DNA of 64,000 nt from Rebecca billardiae RCC1528 (GCA_965240325.2 OZ251246.1:806001-870000), one strand, 5' to 3'; positions 17,082 to 62,918 are shown, numbered from the stretch's first letter. Notes: generated by a model from the letters alone, not told the origin. A program made the numbers and translations.

Positions 17082-18916
17082 GTCTAGCCGTCCTCGTGAA
17101 CGCCGATGCCAACTGCTGGCCGAAGGTGGGCACGCCGCCTGGCATGTCGATGCCGAGGCGGCTGCGTGTGTTCCTACTCAGTGGGATTTACGTGTCCTCA
17201 TGCCTTGGCGAGCGGCAGCAGATGCGGTGGGCATGCCGCTCGCCGTCGACGAGACGCGGTGCGTGAGTGATCCCGCGCGGACGTCCGCTGACGGAAGGCT
17301 GAGCGCCTGCGGACTCGTCGACTGAACCTCCACCTGACCGCCCGGGAGCAGCACTGCTGGGGACCTAACCTGAAAAACCCAATCGTGTTGGGAGGCAGGG
17401 GGTCACATGAGCCCTAAGTGCAGCGCCGCAGGACCGGGCGGTCGGACGGCGGGTGTTGTGGTCCCGCCGCCCGAGCACCAGACCAACGGGCCCTGGGTGG
17501 GCGGGTTGCCGAAAGATGTTGGTCGGTGCACGCGACGCGCCACCCGCGTGCGAGCCGCCGCCGCCGGCGACGCAGGGCCACGAGCCCGGCTGCAGCCATC
17601 TCGCGCGCCCGCGCCTGGCGAAGCAGCCAGGGGGCGCCGGAAACAGCAGATCTCCGCGGCGACAAACCCGGACAGACTGTTTGTCCGGGAGCAGCGCTTT
17701 GAGGCGATGGTCTGGTAGAGGGCGATGTGGCTGATGAGCGGCGCTGGCGCCCGGCGTTCTTGTCGTCCTCTTAGACAATCAGTTATTGTACCAATAACCC
17801 CACGTCTAGCCGTCCTCGTGAACGCCGATGCCAACTGCTGGCCGAAGGTGGGCACGCCGCCTGGCATGTCGATGCCGAGGCGGCTGCGTGTGTTCCTACT
17901 CAGTGGGATTTACGTGTCCTCATGCCTTGGCGAGCGGCAGCAGATGCGGTGGGCATGCCGCTCGCCGTCGACGAGACGCGGTGCGTGAGTGATCCCGTTT
18001 CATGGTGTGTTGGGGAGCACCGCGTGGAGGAGAAATCCCATTGAGTGATGGGAAGGAAAGGGGCAAGGCACGTGTGAGTCGCGCACGCACGAGGGCCGGC
18101 CAGCGGGGGCTGGGCAGGTGGGGCAGTGCGAGTGAGATGGAACCCGAAGAGGAGAGATAGCAGGCAGCCCGCCCCGCGGGCGCGGCGCTGCGGAAGCAGG
18201 AGAAGGCTAGACGGCCTTTGCGGATGCTGTGAATGGCCCGCGGGTGCGCACGGGGCCCGGCGCGCGGTGTGCCGCCAGCGGTCCTTGTGTAGGAGCCGGC
18301 TGGCGTTGGCACCGGGGCGATCCCGAGGCAGGGCGGGAGAGATGGAGCAGCGATCCGCGTGGGGGCGCACCCACGGAGGAGGAGGCATGTGGCGAAGAGG
18401 GAACGGTGGCGATCGGGGGTGCGGGAGAGACAAAGTGCGCACGCACGCAGAGAGAGAAGAGGCGGTGGCCCGAAGCGCGAGGGGGCGCGATGCGGAGCGT
18501 TGCTTACCGCTGAGTTGCCGAAAGATGTTGGTCGGTGCACGCGACGCGCCACCCGCGTGCGAGCCGCCGCCGCCGGCGACGCAGGGCCACGAGCCCGGCT
18601 GCAGCCATCTCGCGCGCCCGCGCCTGAGATGTTGGTCGGTGCACGCGACGCGCCACCCGCGTGCGAGCCGCCGCCGCCGGCGACGCAGGGCCACGAGCCC
18701 GGCTGCAGCCATCTCGCGCGCCCGCGCCTGGCGAAGCAGCCAGGGGGCGCCGGAAACAGCAGATCTCCGCGGCGACAAACCCGGACAGACTGTTTGTCCG
18801 GGAGCAGCGCTTTGAGGCGATGGTCTGGTAGAGGGCGATGTGGCTGATGAGCGGCGCTGGCGCCCGGCGTTCTTGTCGTCCTCTTAGACAATCAGTTATT
18901 GTACCAATAACCCCAC
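17082..18916 (-). mobile_element. Non-autonomous split-direct-repeat (Ngaro/PAT-like) element, family 2: A1 18916-18514, B1 17997-17804, A2 17803-17505, B2 17275-17082
   Basis: Two near-identical repeat pairs in A1..B1A2..B2 order; B1 abuts A2 at AC|GT; ATAT on both flanks. A1 carries an internal ~100-bp tandem duplication. Confidence 0.85.
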
Positions 18917-19647: not shown

Positions 19648-19711
19648 CGCTTGCCCATTGAAGTACCACGTCGTTATATATATAACGACGTGGTACTTCA
19701 ACGGGCAAGCG
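19648..19711. repeat. Near-perfect palindrome of two LINE-type 3' tails around TATA
   Basis: CGCTTGCCCATTGAAGTACCACGTCGTTATA-TA-TATAACGACGTGGTACTTCAACGGGCAAGCG; one mismatch. Confidence 0.9.
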
Positions 19712-37569: not shown

Positions 37570-38026
37570 TGCGACATCGACTACCACCTCATCTGCTTCA
37601 TCGCCCAGAGCGCGCTAGGCGGCGCGCTCACTCTCCAAGCCCCTCTTCTGCAGCTGCGCGCCGCTTGGCCGGCGCGCGGCGACGCGTACTACGACCTCAT
37701 CCTCATCCAGGCGCCCACGCGGGCGCACGGGGGCGACAGCCGCGGCTGCCGCTTGCCGGAGCTGCTCGCTGCTAGGTCGGCGGGCGGCGACATCGACTAC
37801 GACCTCACCCTCATCCAAGTGCTCCGGAAGGCGCTCGGCCGCGGCGGCATCTGCCGTCGCCGCCGCGTGCCCCAGGCCGAGGCGGTGCTCCATCCCCGGC
37901 CCCGCTCCCGTAGGGGGGCAGGGCTGCGGGTGGCGCACTGTCTGACCTGGACGGAAGGCGCGGACGCATTCTATGTGTCTGTTGCACTCTGAGCCTGACG
38001 CTTGTCCGATGCTGCCACGTCGTTAA
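37570..38026 (+). mobile_element. Repeat family S (SINE-like or 5'-truncated LINE) ending CCACGTCGTTAA-(TA)n
   Basis: Near-identical to 62590-62918; three internal GACATCGACTACGACCTC-like subrepeats. Confidence 0.75.
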
Positions 38027-38568
38027 ATATATATATGCATATATATATATATAGATAGATAGATAGATAGCTAGCTAGATAGATACATCAGATAGATACT
38101 GATAGATAGATATGAGATAGCAGATCTATAGCAGATCATAGCAGATAGCAGATTAGCAGATAGCAGATAGCAGATAGTAGATAGCAGATACGGCAGATAC
38201 GTATCATCGCGTATAGTAATGGCATGCCGATCGGAACGCTGTTCCCGGCCGTCGGCGGATATAATCATGACGAATGAATATGACGATCGTTAGATAGATA
38301 GATAGCAGATAGCAGATAGCAGATAGCAGATAGCAGATTATAGCAGATAGCAGATAGCAGATAGCAGATAGCAGATACGGCAGATACGTATCATCGCGTA
38401 TAGTAATGGCATGCCGATCGGAACGCTGTTCCCGGCCGTCGGCGGATATAATAATGACGAATGAATATGACGATCGTATCGATGTGACACGGCCCAGCAA
38501 GCAGTAGCAATACTTTATTCAGCAATTTCATTATATATATATATATGCATACATATATATATATATAT
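38027..38568. repeat. Compound microsatellite (TA)n/(AGAT)n/(AGCAGAT)n with a ~185-bp tandem duplication
   Basis: The unique block AGATACGGCAGATACG...GAATATGACGATCGT occurs twice (~38187-38290, ~38373-38477). Confidence 0.9.
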
Positions 38569-38883
38569 TAACGACGTGGTATGCAACGGGCAGGCGTCAG
38601 AGTCAGCAAGTTGTAGCAGCAGATCGAGCAGCAGAGACAAACACCAGGATCAGCGCTCCTCGCCGTCGTCCCCCCCCTCGTAGTCGGTAAGTCGCCCATC
38701 GATCACTCCATCGCCGAGCGGATTGCGGAAGCTCGACGCACCGTGACCGTCTGGCGTCGACGCGCGCGCGCCACCGCGGTGGTCGCGGTGCCACGCGTCG
38801 TCAGCCGTCGTCTCGAAGTAGTATCGTCGTATGCAGCGCCCCCGCAGCGGGCGCGTGCCCCCGGGCACACGTGCGCCATGCGC
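38568..38883 (-). mobile_element. 5'-truncated copy of the CRE-like LINE 3' end
   Basis: Aligns to 56565-56855; ends at (TA)n. Confidence 0.8.
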
Positions 38884-39246: not shown

Positions 39247-40132
<886 letters not shown>

Positions 40133-49927: not shown

Positions 49928-50532
49928 GTGGCGTTATAGGGAACCTATAACTGAGTGTCTACTGTCTATGAGCGACGCCAAGAATCCGGCTCGCACGGCA
50001 TTCCTGCGTTGTCCTGTGCGCACCGCCGCGCGCAGGAGTCCTGGTGCGCTGCCACTATCTGGCCCACAGCGGCGCACCTGCAGGACTCGGTTGGTTACCG
50101 CTCACATCGGATCGATCAGGCTTCGCTCTCGGGGGCGCCATGGGGCTGCTCACGACGAAGGCGCCGAGCTGGGCGAGGGAATCGCCTGCATCGGGCACTG
50201 CCGGGTGCACGCTCCGCTGCAGGAGGTGCACCGCAGTCGCCGCAGCCCCTCTGCTCGGTAAGGTCGCTGGCTGTCTGTGTGGCCCGGCTCCCCGCCTGAT
50301 CGTGACTCGCGGGCGCCCTCTCGACCTCGGGCACTCGGCAGCTCAACCGCCACGCCGCTGCCAGCGCCCGCTGTCGTTCGTTGCTCAAATCCCAACATAG
50401 CTAACCTGATCGTTCCATGATTGATCATTGTGGTCTGTCTACTCCACGACGCCGCGCGCCGCGACCATCCAGCTCCAGAGTCCATTCGTACCCGACGCCT
50501 TGTACGAGCCGGGCATGGCGGAGTGGCTAGAC
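49928..50532 (+). mobile_element. SDR-type element remnant, family 3
   Basis: Starts GTGGCGTTATAGGGAACCTATAACTGAGTGTCT; ends GGCTAGAC|ATAT like the family 2 B end. Confidence 0.75.
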
Positions 50533-50544
50533 ATATATATATAT

Positions 50545-51144
50545 GTGGCGTTATAACGGAGTTATAACCGAGTGTGTCGGGAGGCTGGAAAGGCAACGCG
50601 CAGCTGGTGGACAAGGGCCGCCATCGTCTTCTAGGTCCTGCAGGTAGTTGCAGTCGATTTCCGGAGCTCATCGGCCACGGAGCTATCCTTTATCATCATC
50701 ATGGCGGGCGCTGGTCCTTTCATATCGGCCAACCACACTGGCTCCTCTGTAAGTACCCGCTCCTCTCCACTATCCGGCGCTCGAGATCATATACAAGGTC
50801 ATCTTAAGTCGGCGTGGCAACTTACCAAAGTTCATATCAAGCAGCCCACCTAGCAGAGCTCGCTCGATCATCGGTTACACGACCTTTCGGGCCGAGCTGC
50901 TCATCTCTCGGCAGCCCCTGCTTCGGCCTGCGCATCTGCAAAGCCCGAGGTCCCGCCATCTCCTCTGCGTTCTTTGCTTGTGCTCGTTGTTTATACATCA
51001 CCATTTCGGCATGGTGTGTATCGGCATTTGCTGCATGCTCGCATATATGCTGCAATACCTGCCCTCGCATGCACATCACGCAGACTGTGGGTGATGTTCG
51101 TCCATACTCAATGGCGTCGCGTCGCTCTTCATGCAGGAGGACAC
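50545..51144 (+). mobile_element. Family 1 A+B deletion derivative
   Basis: 50545-50989 = repeat A; 50990-51144 = 3' part of repeat B; ATAT flanks. Confidence 0.9.
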
Positions 51145-56269: not shown

Positions 56270-56455
56270 CTTTGACGAAGACGCGATTATATTGTATATC
56301 GTCAAATATATTGAAGCGCGATGATGATCTGACGCGACGATACATACGTATGTATTGTATCAGTATGTACATGTATGTAATGTATGTATGTATGTCGTAT
56401 GTATATGTCGTAGTAGTATGTATATACATGTATATGTATATATATATACATATAT

Positions 56456-56539
56456 TTAACGACGACGTGGCAGCAGCATCGGACAAGCGTCAGGCTCAGA
56501 GTGCAACGTGAGACACATAGAATGCGTCTGCGCCTTCCG
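56456..56539 (-). mobile_element. Short 3'-end copy of family S
   Basis: Reverse complement of ~37953-38026 with small insertions; flanked by TA repeats. Confidence 0.8.
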
Positions 56540-56564: not shown

Positions 56565-57100
56565 TTAACTACGACGCGTGGTATGCAACGGGCAGGCGTC
56601 AGAGTCAGCAAGCTGTAGCAGCAGATCGAGCAGCAGAGACAAACACCAGGATCAGCGCTCCTCGCCGTCGTCCCCCCCCCTCGTAGTCGCCCATCACTCC
56701 ATCGCCGAGCGGAAGCTCGACGCACCGTCTGGCGTCGACGCGCGCGCGCCACCGCGGTGGTCGCGGTGCCACGCGTCGTCAGCCGTCGTCTCGAAGTAGT
56801 CGTCGTATGCAGCGCCCCCGCGGGCGCGTGCCCCCGGGCGCACGTGCGCCATGCGCGCGCGGGCGATGAGCATCTTGGCCTGGCCACGCAGGCAGCGCAT
56901 GCCCAGCTCGCGCCCGGCATGGTGCCGAGCAGCGCGCGCTCGGCGGCGGGGCGCGAGGGCGCGCTGAGGCGCGCGCGCCACGTGTCCCGCCCCATCTTAT
57001 TGGCGATCTTCTTGGGGGTGAGGTCCACCTCCGCGCTCCACTCGCCGAACGCCCCCACGACAATCGGGACGATCGCGGGGAAGGTGTCGAGCCGCGCCTC
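56565..57100 (-). mobile_element. 5'-truncated non-LTR retrotransposon (CRE-like, RLE C-terminus plus 3' UTR)
   Basis: IVPIVVGAFGEWS.EV....KKIA...RELGMRCLRGQAKML resembles the P.vve.fG.w / L...lqrgna end of RLE domains; one frameshift; (TA)n at both ends. Confidence 0.65.
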
Positions 57101-57114
57101 GTATATATATATAT

Positions 57115-57592
57115 GTGGGGTTATTGGTACAATAACTGATTGTCTAAGACGACGACAAGAACGCCGGGCGCCAGCGCCGCTCATCAGCCACATCGCCCTC
57201 TACCAGACCATCGCCTCAAAGCGCTGCTCCCGGACAAACAGTCTGTCCGGGTTTGTCGCCGCGGAGATCTGCTGTTTCCGGCGCCCCCTGGCTGCTTCGC
57301 CAGGCGCGGGCGCGCGAGATGGCTGCAGCCGGGCTCGTGGCCCTGCGTCGCCGGCGGCGGCGGCTCGCACGCGGGTGGCGCGTCGCGTGCACCGACCAAC
57401 ATCTTTCGGCCGCGCCGCGTCTCGTCGACGGCGAGCGGCATGCCCACCGCATCTGCTGCCGCTCGCCAAGGCATGAGGACACGTAAATCCCACTGAGTAG
57501 GAACACACGCAGCCGCCTCGGCATCGACATGCCAGGCGGCGTGCCCACCTTCGGCCAGCTGTTGGCGTCGGCGTTCACGAGGACGGCTAGAC
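57115..57592 (+). mobile_element. Family 2 A+B deletion derivative
   Basis: 57115-57410 matches repeat A and 57415-57592 matches repeat B of the 17-19 kb element. Confidence 0.9.
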
Positions 57593-58031
57593 ATATATGT
57601 GGCGTTATAACGGAGTTATAACCGAGTGTGTCGGGAGGCTGGAAAGGCAACGCGCAGCTGGTGGACAAGGGCCGCCATCGTCTTCTAGGTCCTGCAGGTA
57701 GTTGCAGTCGATTTCCGGAGCTCATCGGCCACGGAGCTATCCTTTATCATCATCATGGCGGGCGCTGGTCCTTTCATATCGGCCAACCACACTGGCTCCT
57801 CTGTAAGTACCCGCTCCTCTCCACTATCCGGCGCTCGAGATCATATACAAGGTCATCTTAAGTCGGCGTGGCAACTTACCAAAGTTCATATCAAGCAGCC
57901 CACCTAGCAGAGCTCGCTCGATCATCGGTTACACGACCTTTCGGGCCGAGCTGCTCATCTCTCGGCAGCCCCTGCTTCGGCCTGCGCATCTGCAAAGCCC
58001 GAGGTCCCGCCATCTCCTCTGCGTTCTTTGC

Positions 58032-60488
58032 TTGTGCTCGTTGCTCGCCGCGCTCCCCTTTGACTCCACGTCGGCGCGCTTTGACCCTCCTCACACCAAC
58101 GTGCCGACGCCGCGGCGGCAGCGTGCGACTTCGTACCGCCCGCGGTCGGTTGCTGACATCCTCTTACCCGCGGCGCTCGAGCTCGTCGCGGGCTGGCGCC
58201 GCCGCGAGGAGGCCGACCTGCGCGCGTACCTCTCGCTCGGCTCAGCCGCCCGGCGCACCAACGCGCCGCTCGCCATCGGCCAGGACCTCTTCCACCCGGA
58301 GGCCCGCGGCATCGTCTGGGACCTTCGGAGCAAGGTGGACGGCGTGTACTTGCCGCTCGACTTCTCGGCGCCGCTCGAGTCGCGCACGCTCATGCCGGAC
58401 GCCCTCGAAGCTGCCGTCGGTCCCGACTTCCCCGACCGCGAGCTGCTCTCCTTTGTGCGCCACGGTGTGCGGTTCAAGGCCGATGTGGCTCTCCAGCTCG
58501 TGCTGCTGCCGCACCTCACCACCCTCGGCGCGGCCGCCTCCTCCGTGCACAAGGAGCTCCTCCGCCTCGCGGCGCGCGGCTGGTACAGCTTCTGGGACGA
58601 CTTCCCGTTCCTCCCGTGCCGGCTCAGCCCGCAGGGGTCCACGCCGCGCAAGCTCGAGCCGGACCGGCACCGCCGCACGACCGATGGCGGCGCGCCCCGC
58701 CGCGCGCTCGTCGACACAGCTGGCGTGCCTGTCATCCCGCTCAACGTCGCTGTCGGTCTCCACGACGAGGTCGCTGACGCGGCCGCGGGCTGGCACGACG
58801 TGCCCCGCCCAGCAGCGGCTGCCCCGTCCGCCGCGGCCGAGCGGATGATCGCAGCGGGTCTTACGCCCACCCTGCCGCGCGCGCCGCCGCGCAAGTGGCC
58901 GCGCGAAGCCAAGCCCACGGTCGGCGGCAAGATGCACGACAACGCGATCCTGCTCGACGCCGCCGCCGTGTTTGGCGAGCCAATACTCACGCTCACAGAC
59001 GACGTGGCCGACTTCTTCAACCACCTCGGCGTCGCAACGGCCGAGCTGCCAAACGTCTGCCTCCTCTGGCTGCGGCCGGACGGCGAGGGCGTTGCCGCCG
59101 GCGGCCACGTCGTCGTCTCTGAGTCGCGCCTCGGCTTTGGGCTCTCGCCCAGCAGTAACATCGCGCAGCGCCTAAGCACGACCGTCGTGCAGATCGCCTC
59201 GCGGTGCTTCGACGACGAGGAGCTGCCGCGCTTCGAGGCGATGCTCGCTGACCCGCTGACGCCCCCTGCTGTGCGCAGCTGGATCGAGCAGCGCCGTGCG
59301 CTCGCGGTGACCACGCGGCGCCCCCAGCTGCGCCTCTTCAGCGGCGACTGCTTCACGGACGACACCAACTTCTCCATCGTCGGCGTGGACAGAACGGTGC
59401 GCTTTCTCTCCGTCTGGCACCGCGTCACCACCAGCCTCGGCCTGCTCATGGCCATCCCCGAGAAGCGCCAAATCGGCCAGTCAGCGCTCTGGCTCGGCTG
59501 CGACTTTGTCGTCTGCGCTGGCGTCCTCGCGGTGCCGCCGGCCAAGATCCTGCGCGCTCTCGTCATCCTGGACGACTTGCTGGCGAGCAGGCCGGTACCC
59601 TTCTCTACCTTTCGCGCGCTCGTCGGTCTGCTCGAGCACTTCCGCCCGCTCACGCCGGCGAACCGCACGTTCTTCTACGGCCTGTACACGCACTTCGGCG
59701 AGCTCGGACGCCACCCAGCGCGGCCGGTGCCCATCACCGCCACGCTCCGCGCCGCGTGCGCGCGCTGGGCCAAGCTCCTGCGCTCCACCGCGGGCGTGCT
59801 CTTCTCCAACGCGCTGCCGGGCCCCTCGACCCGCCGGCACCTGCCGGCCGCGGCGCCGCCTGCGTTCGTGCTCTTCTCGGACGCCGCCAAGGATGGCGCG
59901 CGCGTGCCGTCGCTGGGGGGCTACGCCCACGGGCTCTGCTGGAGCCTGCCCTTGCGCGCGTCGGACCTCGCTCTGCCGGTGGTCGCGCTCGAGTTCGTCG
60001 CGCTGTTCGCCAACGTGCTGATCTTCGCGCCGCGCATTGCAGGCGCCGTCATCCGGCTCCGCACCGACAGCTCTGTCACCGACCACATCCTCCACAACCT
60101 GTCCGCGCACTCCCCGCTGCTGCAGCACGCGCACCTCGCGCTGCTCGACGCCCCTGAATGGCGGGCGATCGCAGAGCTGGCCGACTCGGAGTTCCTCCTC
60201 TCCGAGATGAACCCGTTGGCGGACGCAGCTAGCCGCGGCGAGTTTGGCGTCCTCGAGCGCCTGTGCGCCCAGCTCGGCCTACGCCCGACGTGGCTCGCAG
60301 TGCCCGTCGTGCGCGTGCAGGCGCTGCTTGACGAGCTCGTCGCGCTGCTCTCGCGTCCGCTCGTCCTCGCTGCCGATCCGCCCATGCCGCTGCGCGGTGA
60401 GCGCGTGGGCGAGGCCAGCAACCCTGGGCCGGTGTGGCGGCGCTCGCGAGTCCGTGGCGCGCCGCCCGCGGTGGGCGCTTGTCGCTGA
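58032..60488 (+). CDS. DIRS-type reverse transcriptase-RNase H, likely 5'-deleted (no gag; first ATG 58392)
   Basis: RRTTDGG, DDVADFFNHL, LGFGLSPSSNIAQRL, CFTDD, KRQIG..ALWLG; RNase H FSDAA, LEFVAL, RTDSS, NPLADAASRG. Confidence 0.88.
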   Translation: MCSLLAALPFDSTSARFDPPHTNVPTPRRQRATSYRPRSVADILLPAALELVAGWRRREEADLRAYLSLGSAARRTNAPLAIGQDLFHPEARGIVWDLRSKVDGVYLPLDFSAPLESRTLMPDALEAAVGPDFPDRELLSFVRHGVRFKADVALQLVLLPHLTTLGAAASSVHKELLRLAARGWYSFWDDFPFLPCRLSPQGSTPRKLEPDRHRRTTDGGAPRRALVDTAGVPVIPLNVAVGLHDEVADAAAGWHDVPRPAAAAPSAAAERMIAAGLTPTLPRAPPRKWPREAKPTVGGKMHDNAILLDAAAVFGEPILTLTDDVADFFNHLGVATAELPNVCLLWLRPDGEGVAAGGHVVVSESRLGFGLSPSSNIAQRLSTTVVQIASRCFDDEELPRFEAMLADPLTPPAVRSWIEQRRALAVTTRRPQLRLFSGDCFTDDTNFSIVGVDRTVRFLSVWHRVTTSLGLLMAIPEKRQIGQSALWLGCDFVVCAGVLAVPPAKILRALVILDDLLASRPVPFSTFRALVGLLEHFRPLTPANRTFFYGLYTHFGELGRHPARPVPITATLRAACARWAKLLRSTAGVLFSNALPGPSTRRHLPAAAPPAFVLFSDAAKDGARVPSLGGYAHGLCWSLPLRASDLALPVVALEFVALFANVLIFAPRIAGAVIRLRTDSSVTDHILHNLSAHSPLLQHAHLALLDAPEWRAIAELADSEFLLSEMNPLADAASRGEFGVLERLCAQLGLRPTWLAVPVVRVQALLDELVALLSRPLVLAADPPMPLRGERVGEASNPGPVWRRSRVRGAPPAVGACR

Positions 60489-60703
60489 GACACGGACGCC
60501 GCTGCATCGACTGCTCGCCAGTCGCGCGGCGCAGTTTGGCGGCGGCCGCCGCCCGTCGCGCTCGCGCTGCAGTCGCGCTCGCAGCCGGATCCGGCCCTCG
60601 CACCGGCGCACGCGTTGCCGGCTCCGCTGGGAGGCGCGCCCTGGCGACGCGGCGCACATCTCTCGCTCAAGTTGCAGCAACATCGTCTCTACGCTTCGGC
60701 CAA

Positions 60704-61192
60704 GCCTTTGTAGGCCACCAGCCTTTGTGGGCACAGCCTTTGCAGGCATACCCGTGACCTTTGTAGGCACAGCCTTTGTAGGCACACCCGTGACCTTTGT
60801 AGGCACAGCCTTTGTAGGCACAACCGTGACCTTTGTAGGCACACCAGTGACCTTTGTAGGCACAGCCTTTGTAGGCACACCCGTGACCTTTGTAGGCACA
60901 GCCTTTGTAGGCACACCAGTGACCTTTGTAGGCACACCAGTGACCTTTGTAGGCACACCAGTGACCTTTGTAGGCACAGCCTTTGTAGGCACACCCGTGA
61001 CCTTTGTAGGCACAGCCTTTGTAGGCACACCCGTGACCTTTGTAGGCCACACCAGTGACCTTTGTAGGCACACCAGTGACCTTTGTAGGCACAGCCTTTG
61101 TAGGCACATCCGTGACCTTTGTAGGCACACCAGTGACCTTTGTAGGCACAGCCTTTGTAGGCACAGCCCTTGCGGGCCAGACCTTTGTAGGT
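60704..61192. repeat. Tandem array of ~27 units of 15 bp (CCTTTGTAGGCACAG) and 21 bp (CCTTTGTAGGCACACCMGTGA)
   Basis: Seen directly; degenerate units at both edges. Confidence 0.95.
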
Positions 61193-62458
61193 CCGGAGGT
61201 CCCCACGCACCCACCCCCGAACTCGCTTACCCAACGCGCGCGCGCGCGCGCACACGCACGCAACCTCAAAAAAAAAACCCAAAAAAAAAAAACGAGGACG
61301 TGCCACCTTGCGCTACAGACCTCTGGCCTCCTCCGTGTCATCCGCCTCCATCATCTCTCAGCAGCGCCCTCATCCTCAACGGGATCTCTCCTGCTCACAA
61401 ACGGGACCTTGCTGCCACACGCTGGCGCAGTCTGCGCGCAGCTTTGGCACCGTCGGCTCAGTCGCTCTTCCCGTTCAGCCAGGGACAAATCCCCACCACG
61501 CGCAAGTATATATTTATACATCACCATTTCGGCATGGTGTGTATCGGCATTTGCTGCATGCTCGCATATATGCTGCAATACCTGCCCTCGCATGCACATC
61601 ACGCAGACTGTGGGTGATGTTCGTCCATACTCAATGGCGTCGCGTCGCTCTTCATGCAGGAGGACACGTGGCGTTATAACGGAGTTATAACCGAGTGTGT
61701 CGGGAGGCTGGAAAGGCAACGCGCAGCTGGTGGACAAGGGCCGCCATCGTCTTCTAGGTCCTGCAGGTAGTTGCAGTCGATTTCCGGAGCTCATCGGCCA
61801 CGGAGCTATCCTTTATCATCATCATGGCGGGCGCTGGTCCTTTCATATCGGCCAACCACACTGGCTCCTCTGTAAGTACCCGCTCCTCTCCACTATCCGG
61901 CGCTCGAGATCATATACAAGGTCATCTTAAGTCGGCGTGGCAACTTACCAAAGTTCATATCAAGCAGCCCACCTAGCAGAGCTCGCTCGATCATCGGTTA
62001 CACGACCTTTCGGGCCGAGCTGCTCATCTCTCGGCAGCCCCTGCTTCGGCCTGCGCATCTGCAAAGCCCGAGGTCCCGCCATCTCCTCTGCGTTCTTTGC
62101 TTGTGCTCGTTGCGAAACCCGCCATCCGCCCCTGCAGCCTCCGTTGTGGTTGACAACCTTGTCGTCAGGCCTGTGAGTGCTGCGCTTGCCTGAGCCAGGG
62201 ACCTTGCTGCCACACGCTGGCGCAGTCTGCGCGCAGCTTTGGCACCGTCGGCTCAGTCGCTCTTCCCGTTCAGCCAGGGACAAATCCCCACCACGCGCAA
62301 GTATATATTTATACATCACCATTTCGGCATGGTGTGTATCGGCATTTGCTGCATGCTCGCATATATGCTGCAATACCTGCCCTCGCATGCACATCACGCA
62401 GACTGTGGGTGATGTTCGTCCATACTCAATGGCGTCGCGTCGCTCTTCATGCAGGAGG

Positions 62459-62462
<4 letters not shown>

Positions 62463-62540
<78 letters not shown>
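62463..62540. repeat. (TA)n microsatellite
   Basis: Seen directly. Confidence 0.97.
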
Positions 62541-62542
<2 letters not shown>

Positions 62543-62544
<2 letters not shown>

Positions 62545-62918
62545 CTGACTCTGACGCCTGCCCGTTGCATACCACGTCGTTAATATATGATCCTCATCCA
62601 GGCGCCCACACGGGCGCACGGGGGCGACAGCCGCGGCTGCCGCTTGCCGGAGCTGCTCGCCGCTAGGTCGGCGGGCGGCGACATCGACTACGACCTCACC
62701 CTCATCCAAGTGCTCCGGAAGGCGCTCGGCCGCGGCGGCATCTGCCGTCGCCGCCGCGTGCCCCAGGCCGAGGCGGTGCTCCATCCCGGCCCCGCAATCC
62801 CGTAGGGGGGCAGGGCTGCGGGTGGCGCACTGTCTGGCCTGGACGGAAGGCGCGGACGCATTCTATGTGTCTGTTGCACTCTGAGCCTGACGCTTGTCCG
62901 ATGCTGCCACGTCGTTAA
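62543..62918 (+). mobile_element. ~40-bp LINE 3' tail (62543-62583) followed by a family S copy (62590-62918)
   Basis: Both end CCACGTCGTTAA followed by ATAT. Confidence 0.8.

Follow-up and report, generated by a model that had tools for sequence, protein, structure and literature searches.

The 64,000-nucleotide stretch of DNA from Rebecca billardiae RCC1528 analysed here (GCA_965240325.2 OZ251246.1:806001-870000; hereafter the window) contains at 57599-62462 a retroelement bordered by TA repeats on both sides, which we refer to as the family-1 element. It is probably a young, internally deleted and non-autonomous copy of a tyrosine recombinase (YR) retrotransposon, in which a recombinase would join the AC|GT termini of the element into (T)ATAT|AT(AT)n tracts of the host DNA (vertical bars mark joints). 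About 200 young insertions in the genome, belonging to at least five families, display the junction …ATAT|GT…AC|ATAT…, and these YR element families insert almost only into short TA-repeat tracts in a GC-rich genome.

Split direct repeats and their TA-repeat flanks

Repeat searches reproduced the A1..B1A2..B2 architecture described in the initial annotation, together with the sequences at its joints. These are ...GCAGGAGGACAC|GTGGCGTTATAAC (GGACAC|GTGGCG) at the internal junction and, at the outer ends, first given as ATAT|GTGG and ACAC|ATAT, gacATATAT|GTGGCG on the left and GGACAC|(AT)39 on the right (Table 1). An inverted-repeat search at the element recovered the AT run only, and the repeats of the element itself are all direct. 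The left terminus of A1, GTGGCGTTATAAC-GGA-GTTATAAC-CGAGTGTGT, forms a conserved and covarying stem, and a GTGGNGTTAT hairpin is common to the left ends of several families, with ...AC as their right end. Compensatory changes between families (AAC/GTT, AGC/GCT, AGG/CCT, TTG/CAA) argue for this hairpin; RNA folding of the first 40 nt gave z-scores of -1.9 to +0.8, that is, no energy support. The non-coding families 2-4 share a left terminus of ~33 nt as well as the ...AC right end, and should therefore be able to use the same enzymes. Within repeat A (57746-57800; in A2 61815-61870), an ATG is followed 48 nt downstream by CTCTGTAAGTACC; judged from the sequence, the pair resembles a start codon and a 5' splice site, and a first exon may lie in A1.

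The association with TA repeats that was initially read from six window copies belonging to four families holds both there, where AT runs adjoin both sides of 6/6 copies, and across the genome. Among the six is the family-2 non-coding element, for which the same logic had been proposed; it is indeed laid out alike, its internal junction being CTAGAC|GTGGGG and its flanks rich in AT. A search of the 72-Mb genome with the left-terminus pattern GTGGNGTTAT-N9-ATAAC gave 224 matches versus 0 for the reversed pattern that served as a control. Internal junctions (GAGGACAC| or GGCTAGAC|) account for 66 of the 224, and AT occurs at none of them (0/66); the AT accordingly belongs to the host DNA and not to the element. 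Among the matches listed, ATAT precedes 114 of the 133 outer 5' ends (86%), and (GT)4 or more precedes 5; the background of ATAT is 0.6% of window positions, and the TA association is therefore not due to chance. The opposite outcome, most genomic copies lying outside TA repeats, is thus not what the genome holds.

A similar picture emerges at the 3' outer ends. ATAT comes next at 65 of the 74 family-3 ends (...GGCTAGAC), with (AT)4 or more at 59 of them. Family-1 ends (...GGACAC, n=72) are followed directly by ATAT in 28 cases, by extra AC units in 35, by other AT-rich sequence in 3 and by unrelated flanks in 6, and the extra AC units give way to AT in every case that was read through (L032, L041, L043, L053). 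There was no clear enrichment for an extended consensus to the left of TATAT, such as C at -6. The window also contains (AT)n tracts of 9-23 nt that are free of elements, so that AT tracts are not merely parts of elements; the AT runs adjacent to elements measure 58-121 nt. The earlier description of the target as (TA)n microsatellites stands in so far as AT flanks are found genome-wide, but many of these flanks comprise only 4-6 nt of AT and are not long microsatellites.

Three further observations bear on the target. A fifth, autonomous family, with a reverse transcriptase (RT) ~57% identical, has the left end GTGTCC (GTGTCCTTGACC) directly after (AT)23 (L018 4140-4215, contig 5); it is without the GTTAT stem, and just upstream a different element, with (AC)10 at its end, precedes that AT run. 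On contig 19 (L049, 1502270-1504110), a family-3 dimer lies inside a minisatellite of AGCTATAT-AC-ATATATAT units, and the AC 3' of its right end is native to the minisatellite, which makes TATAT|ACAT another accepted target. Finally, a repeat family resembling long interspersed nuclear elements (LINEs), which ends ...(T/C)GC(C/A)..CCACGTCGTTAA followed by (TA)n and is often reduced to 5'-truncated tails of 40-50 nt, occupies the same TA tracts (Table 1).

Coding capacity, complementary copies and relatives

That the element carries an RT with ribonuclease H (RNase H), as first proposed, is borne out by motifs and fold. A Pfam scan of the element's open reading frames (ORFs), including that of 818 amino acids, gave no RT match, and a profile of the RT relatives found nothing relevant among PDB sequences, so the identity of the RT rests on its fold. 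The AlphaFold model of the RT/RNase H ORF, built with 31 relatives, has a mean predicted local distance difference test (pLDDT) score of 84.6, and its best structure matches in the PDB are the RTs of Moloney murine leukaemia virus (MoMLV), XMRV, HERV-K, foamy virus, HIV-1, CaMV and Ty3 (E 4e-12 to 2e-8). The columns DD..DFF, R.GFG..SNIAQR, (Y/F)TDD and K..G..W.G of the RT and DAA, E, D and N..AD..SR of the RNase H are invariant among relatives. From fold and motifs, the 818-aa ORF is thus predicted to be an RT of the retroviral or long terminal repeat (LTR) type with an RNase H.

The family-1 copy in the window is without gag, ~500 N-terminal residues and the recombinase. Full copies (e.g., L016, contig 24) have an extra 2.8 kb between A1 and RT, which comprises a gag-like ORF of ~480-550 codons and ~500 further N-terminal codons of ORF2. 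The subfamily of the window copy ends just past RNase H, ~1.45 kb of recombinase having been deleted directly upstream of the tandem array that begins at 60680. Sister copies on contigs 33, 18, 23, 12 and 38 run in frame from RT-RNase H into YR, and the contig-33 copy retains an intact frame of 1286 codons for RT-RNase H-YR. The tyrosine recombinase invoked in the initial annotation is therefore encoded in the family, by sister copies, but is absent from the element at 57599-62462 itself. Against PF00589 it scored 23.9 bits (E 4e-5), which is below the curated cut-off of 27.1. In an alignment with 17 relatives, the catalytic set is kept, i.e., R (LRKAE), K (SKSD), H-x-x-R (HSFR), W (RWRS) and Y (IYAR). 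The structural model of the recombinase (pLDDT 84.4) matches Cre over both domains (E 6e-7, template modelling score ~0.64), with XerA, XerH, Tn1549 Int and integron integrase at lower rank.

PF00589 is the only Pfam match in the contig-33 polyprotein, whose linker between RNase H and YR consists of ~180 low-complexity, Ala/Pro-rich residues. In YR-bearing copies such as that on contig 33 (L032), this linker holds a 2A-like LRGERVGEA(S/R)NPGP at the same frame position as the 2A-like motif of the window copy. The tandem array alternates units of 21 nt (CCTTTGTAGGCACACC(A/C)GTGA) and 15 nt (CCTTTGTAGGCACAG), and its length differs between copies. As the same array lies downstream of the recombinase stop codon in YR-bearing copies (L032 2840-3190, minus strand), it is a normal 3' part of the element and not a replacement of the recombinase; both subfamilies have conserved it in their 3' untranslated part.

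Two complementary defective subfamilies can accordingly be distinguished. Copies with gag and RT/RNase H but without YR (L016 on contig 24, L015, L017 and L019) include four that are 99-100% identical, and the YR-bearing copies (L032, L033, L034, L035 and L036) are without gag and a varying 5' part in 5/5 cases. The two kinds of copies may be mutually dependent.

A profile search of 1.84 billion representatives returned 806 proteins at E<=1e-30 and 8425 at E<=1e-3, almost all of them without a name and derived from marine metagenomes or read assemblies. We retrieved 230 relatives and searched them with a profile built from the recombinase, which placed a YR C-terminal to RT-RNase H in 128 of the 230 and, among those of 1500 aa or more, in 107 of 124. 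A C5 cytosine DNA methylase (PF00145) is part of the same polyprotein in P0007, P0012, P0013, P0027, P0070 and P0071, the domain order in P0070 being DNA methyltransferase (DNMT)-RT-RNase H-YR. A NADAR domain (PF08719) was seen in the same polyprotein of P0065 and P0082. Two marine-metagenome relatives keep the A1...B1A2...B2 layout and the small left-end stem, yet lie outside TA repeats, and TA targeting therefore characterizes the lineage in this genome and not the clade as a whole. One of the two (L056) has AGG in common between junction and target, as expected from the classical DIRS model; three further contigs of relatives (L057-L059) gave no clear termini.

Table 1. Positions of the family-1 element, its parts and the other repeats considered here; window coordinates unless a contig is named
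Feature	Position	Strand	Remark
Family-1 element, A1-body-B1A2-x-B2 split direct repeats	57599-62462	+	repeat search
5' flank ATATAT	57593-57598	.	between family-2 solo copy end (CTAGAC) and family-1 element
Repeat A1	57599-58044	+	446 nt, 100% identical to A2
RT and RNase H open frame	58032-60488	+	818 codons
RT motif LTDDVADFF	58992-59018	+	
RT motif RLGFG..SNIAQR	59127-59174	+	
RT motif FTDD	59352-59366	+	
RNase H motif SDAA	59871-59897	+	
RNase H motif ALEF	59985-60005	+	
RNase H motif TDS	60060-60074	+	
RNase H motif NPLADAASR	60210-60239	+	
2A-like NPGP motif LRGERVGEASNPGP	60390-60431	+	
Tandem array, 21/15-nt units (CCTTTGTAGGCAC...)	60680-61208	+	
Repeat B1, end ...GCAGGAGGACAC	61403-61667	+	265 nt, 100% identical to B2
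Repeat A2	61668-62113	+	446 nt; B1/A2 junction ACAC|GTGG without AT
Spacer x	62114-62197	+	84 nt, unrepeated, between A2 and B2
Repeat B2, right terminus ...GGACAC	62198-62462	+	265 nt
3' flank (AT)39	62463-62540	.	
Family-2 solo A-B copy	57115-57592	+	flanks (TA)6T| and |ATATAT
Family-1 solo A-B copy (A and 3' part of B)	50545-51144	+	flanks (AT)6| and |ATATAT
Family-3 copy, GTGGCGTTATAGG-GAA-CCTATAAC ... GGCTAGAC	49928-50532	+	flanks (AT)60GTATAT| and |(AT)6
Family-4 copy, GTGGTGTTATTG-GTA-CAATAAC ... (AC)6	39247-40020	+	flanks (AT)29| and |(AT)55
Family-2 non-coding element, A1-body-B1A2-x-B2	17082-18916	-	junction CTAGAC|GTGGGG; both flanks AT-rich
LINE-like tail	38010-38036	+	
LINE-like tail	38553-38610	-	
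LINE-like tails	19655-19705		two, tail to tail
LINE-like tail	56449-56480	-	
LINE-like tail	56566-56610	-	
LINE-like tail	62541-62588	+	
Family-3 arrays (G000)	contig 11 1461144-1468420		
Family-3 arrays (G000)	contig 12 579059-580835, 2334032-2335724		
Family-3 arrays (G000)	contig 19 1059254-1061856		

Joining of the element to its target

In the pathway that we favor, the retroviral-type RT/RNase H of the element would reverse-transcribe its RNA, the termini would be brought together as in the kept internal junction ...AC|GT..., and a Cre-like recombinase would join the DNA precisely into a host (T)ATAT|AT(AT)n, which would yield the product ...ATAT|GTGG......AC|ATAT... with no detectable duplication. 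As the window copy is without YR, its recombinase would have to be supplied in trans by sister copies such as that on contig 33. We infer a joined (circular) intermediate, a choice of TA by the recombinase itself and trans-mobilization, and a circle crossover AC|GT x AT|AT is consistent with the data. The precision of the joints supports a recombinase, as only one of ~72 right ends deviates (GG|TATATA instead of GGACAC). In the head-to-tail arrays of family 3, identical B|A junctions recur every 870-875 bp, up to five in a row, and these tandem arrays, in which up to five junctions are spaced at 874 bp, together with the abundant solo A-B units fit recombination at the junction site. The junction ACACGTGT and the target ATATATAT differ by transitions only, a difference that may, speculatively, allow the target to act as a pseudo-site by analogy with the heterology-tolerant integrase of Tn1549. 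Two other forms of crossover were rejected: one with a long overlap and heteroduplex, given the invariance of both joints (no left joint shows ...ACAC|GTGG unless B lies upstream, and only one right end reads GG|TATATA), and the DIRS1-type model with a shared trinucleotide core, which fits L056 (AGG) and fails these families.

A different view of the same anatomy would be that of an LTR retrotransposon with rearranged or solo LTRs, in which a DDE integrase had made the TA flanks as a short target-site duplication. The best structure matches of the RT are indeed retroviral and LTR-type enzymes, solo A-B copies resemble solo LTRs, and the AT...AT flanks can be read as a duplication of 2 or 4 bp, any such duplication being unreadable where AT stands on both sides. 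However, the repeat order is A..BA..B and not LTR..LTR, the termini are GT..AC and not TG..CA, a recombinase follows RNase H in frame, and neither an integrase (rve/DDE) nor a protease was present in the Pfam columns or scans of the copies and retrieved relatives. Paired flanks were examined for 18 insertions selected for short 5' flanks, and pairs without a matching duplication exist, such as ggggATAT|..|ACACTCAC and TATATAT|..|AATATAT; no duplication is seen in L042 and L052, and one pair shares ATAATAT (L038). An LTR-type element is thus contradicted by the evidence and highly improbable.

The AT flanks are not alike at the elements' two ends. Before the 5' end they measure 4 nt in ~10 cases, 5 nt in ~31, 6 nt in ~19 and 7 nt in ~11 (for example ggggATAT|, caccTATAT| and tccaATAT|), and only ~40% reach 8 nt or more; flanks of at least 8 nt were found at 62 of 158 5' ends versus 59 of 74 family-3 3' ends (80%, p=9e-9), or at 25 of 62 5' ends if family 3 is taken alone. 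Elements therefore tend to lie with their 5' end towards the near edge of the tract, and new copies sit 6 or 12 nt past the end of a resident element. Extra AC units likewise distinguish the ends: they follow 35 of the 72 family-1 3' ends, which end in ACAC, versus 3 of the 74 family-3 ends, which end in GAC, and 0 of 26 family-1 internal junctions. At some 5' ends (GT)n precedes the element, and one copy (L053) reads (AT)n(GT)13|element|(AC)8(AT)n. Such reiteration, restricted to outer ends and tied to a two-unit terminal repeat, resembles the outcome of polymerase slippage at the free end of a template.

Both the polarity of the flanks and the spacing of new copies behind resident ones would be accounted for if the AT run, or at least the long 3' one, were made or lengthened during or after insertion, e.g., by slippage in gap repair or second-strand synthesis, and the true target were a short (T)ATAT. 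AC/GT units can evidently be added at outer ends, and the AT runs next to elements exceed the free ones in length, although longer tracts may simply be larger targets. We nevertheless consider this explanation unlikely, if deserving of some weight: 40% of the 5' flanks also have at least 8 nt of AT, some copies have a short right AT (ATATAT and then unique DNA), free (AT)n tracts exist, and several unrelated families are piled up in one tract, as expected if the tract came first.

Several points weigh against the recombinase-directed reading. Classical tyrosine recombinases need identical overlap regions, and ACAC|GTGG and ATAT|ATAT share only alternate bases; the short core common to junction and target that the DIRS model calls for was seen in L056 and not in these families. 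Insertion anywhere in a tract does not predict the flank polarity. The outer-end-only AC/GT reiteration suggests free ends, synthesized by run-off, at some stage, and sits uneasily with a junction copied from an internal template. Among the copies retrieved, no single one combined gag, RT, RNase H and YR, and the subfamily in the window has no recombinase. The unrelated LINE-like family uses the same TA tracts and relatives with a homologous YR do not target TA, so the TA preference could stem in part from the host DNA and not from the enzyme. In Dictyostelium, moreover, DIRS-1 cDNA is mostly linear and single-stranded (PMC7192593).

Several of these points would be explained if host repair captured linear cDNA with exact GT...AC ends at (TA)n breaks or at hairpins or cruciforms, with no directing role for the YR. 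A target common to other element classes, including the LINE-like family (...CCACGTCGTTAA(TA)n), would then be natural, as would several 99-100% identical copies in the YR-less subfamily of the window, the position of relatives with the same YR family outside TA repeats, the free ends suggested by the reiteration and the mainly linear DIRS-1 cDNA. End-joining normally nibbles or adds bases, whereas the ends are exact in nearly all copies, and host capture fits poorly with a 5' end that faces the near tract edge, with tandem arrays whose identical junctions fit site-specific recombination and with a YR whose catalytic residues are conserved in 128 of 230 relatives. We judge host capture to be quite improbable.

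Another possibility is that the Cre-like YR has evolved to treat the border of a (TA)n tract as a pseudo-site and inserts the element 4-6 nt into the tract, 5' end to the edge, perhaps by way of the four-way junction that an extruded (TA)n cruciform has at its base. The integrated DNA would then have ends synthesized by run-off in place of a junction copied from the internal template. This remains an unlikely variant, to which we give a minor share of belief; if true, it would constitute a pathway of integration new to YR retroelements, and the YR would be a natural integrase directed at microsatellites.

Affinities with known elements and significance

By its layout and domain order, the family-1 element is placed in the DIRS order, with a Ngaro-like layout. 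It has a retroviral-like RT/RNase H with, in sister copies, a tyrosine recombinase in place of a DDE integrase, as well as split direct repeats (A1...B1A2...B2) and no methyltransferase between RNase H and YR. Pfam scans of the copies found no DIRS-type methyltransferase in pol, as PAT-like elements have; there are no inverted terminal repeats and no internal complementary region, as in DIRS1-like elements, all repeats being direct; and the order RT-RNase H-YR is not that of VIPER, in which the YR lies upstream of RT/RNase H.

Among its closest counterparts are the four Ngaro types of Cafeteria burkhardae (PMC8547959), which share the order A1-[ORFs]-B1A2B2, the coding content of gag, RT/RNase H and YR, the lack of a methyltransferase, and solo A-B repeats dispersed through the high-GC genome of a protist. 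Among the Cafeteria types, some prefer AT-richer DNA, namely endogenous virophages (PMC8547959). They differ in that Pfam recognizes their RVT_1 and RNase H and their YR is a separate ORF, whereas here the RT is invisible to Pfam and RT-RNase H-YR form one frame, and no microsatellite target has been reported for them (PMC8547959). SymbioDIRS-Dnmt3 of Symbiodinium (PMC5890265) likewise combines an A-coding-B-A-B layout with a tyrosine recombinase, and its RT is too divergent for Pfam seeds to align (PMC5890265), as the RT described here is missed by Pfam. The C5 DNA methylase of these elements recurs in the polyproteins of metagenomic relatives of the present RT, while Pfam detected none in the copies of this genome, and no target preference has been described for SymbioDIRS. 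The family-1 lineage is probably the Pfam-invisible SymbioDIRS lineage, a likeness that rests on shared features.

Other systems resemble the element in part. DIRS-1 and DIRS1-like elements (PMC7192593) have RT/RNase H and YR, an internal junction that keeps the joined termini, a proposed YR-mediated integration without true duplication and, in DIRS-1, a tendency to insert beside or into resident copies. Unlike the present element, DIRS1-like elements have inverted terminal repeats, an internal complementary region, a methyltransferase and a flanking trinucleotide common to junction and target; here, the junction contains no base of the AT flank. PAT-like or TOC-type elements of nematodes and green algae share the split direct repeats and non-coding derivatives but have a DIRS-type methyltransferase between RNase H and YR, where this family has ~180 low-complexity residues without a Pfam match. 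Naiad, a group of Penelope-like elements (PMC8557442), shows the same strong (TA)n bias, which hides any target duplication, yet has an unrelated RT clade, uses a GIY-YIG endonuclease and target-primed reverse transcription, and has no recombinase. The integrases of Tn916 and Tn1549 provide a working analogy for AC|GT x AT|AT, as this kind of YR joins a circle to AT-rich targets without crossover identity; these are bacterial DNA transposons with variable coupling sequences at both junctions, however, and the junctions described here are almost invariant.

The kind of element is thus already known, and what appears new is the strict (T)ATAT|AT targeting, the polarity of short 5' and long 3' flanks, and the AC/GT reiteration at outer ends only. 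Targets reported for YR retroelements comprise resident DIRS-1 copies and trinucleotide cores (PMC7192593) as well as the virophages to which Ngaros are directed (PMC8547959). In agreement with the view of the initial annotation that such targeting was not known to have been described for this kind of lineage in algae, a full-text literature search found no description of microsatellite targeting by YR retroelements; most subscription journals, including those with the original Ngaro and DIRS papers, lie outside its coverage, so that novelty is not proven. No test has ever been made of which sites the DIRS-1 recombinase is specific for, and the circle model remains largely theoretical (PMC7192593).

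Target choice by YR retrotransposons is almost unknown, and ~200 young insertions with one sharp junction give concrete predictions for it. The analysis also links an abundant, Pfam-invisible clade of marine-protist retroelements (~800 clusters at 50% identity, E<=1e-30) to a clear anatomy and a recombinase. For annotation, it accounts for many of the repeats flanked by AT microsatellites in this genome.

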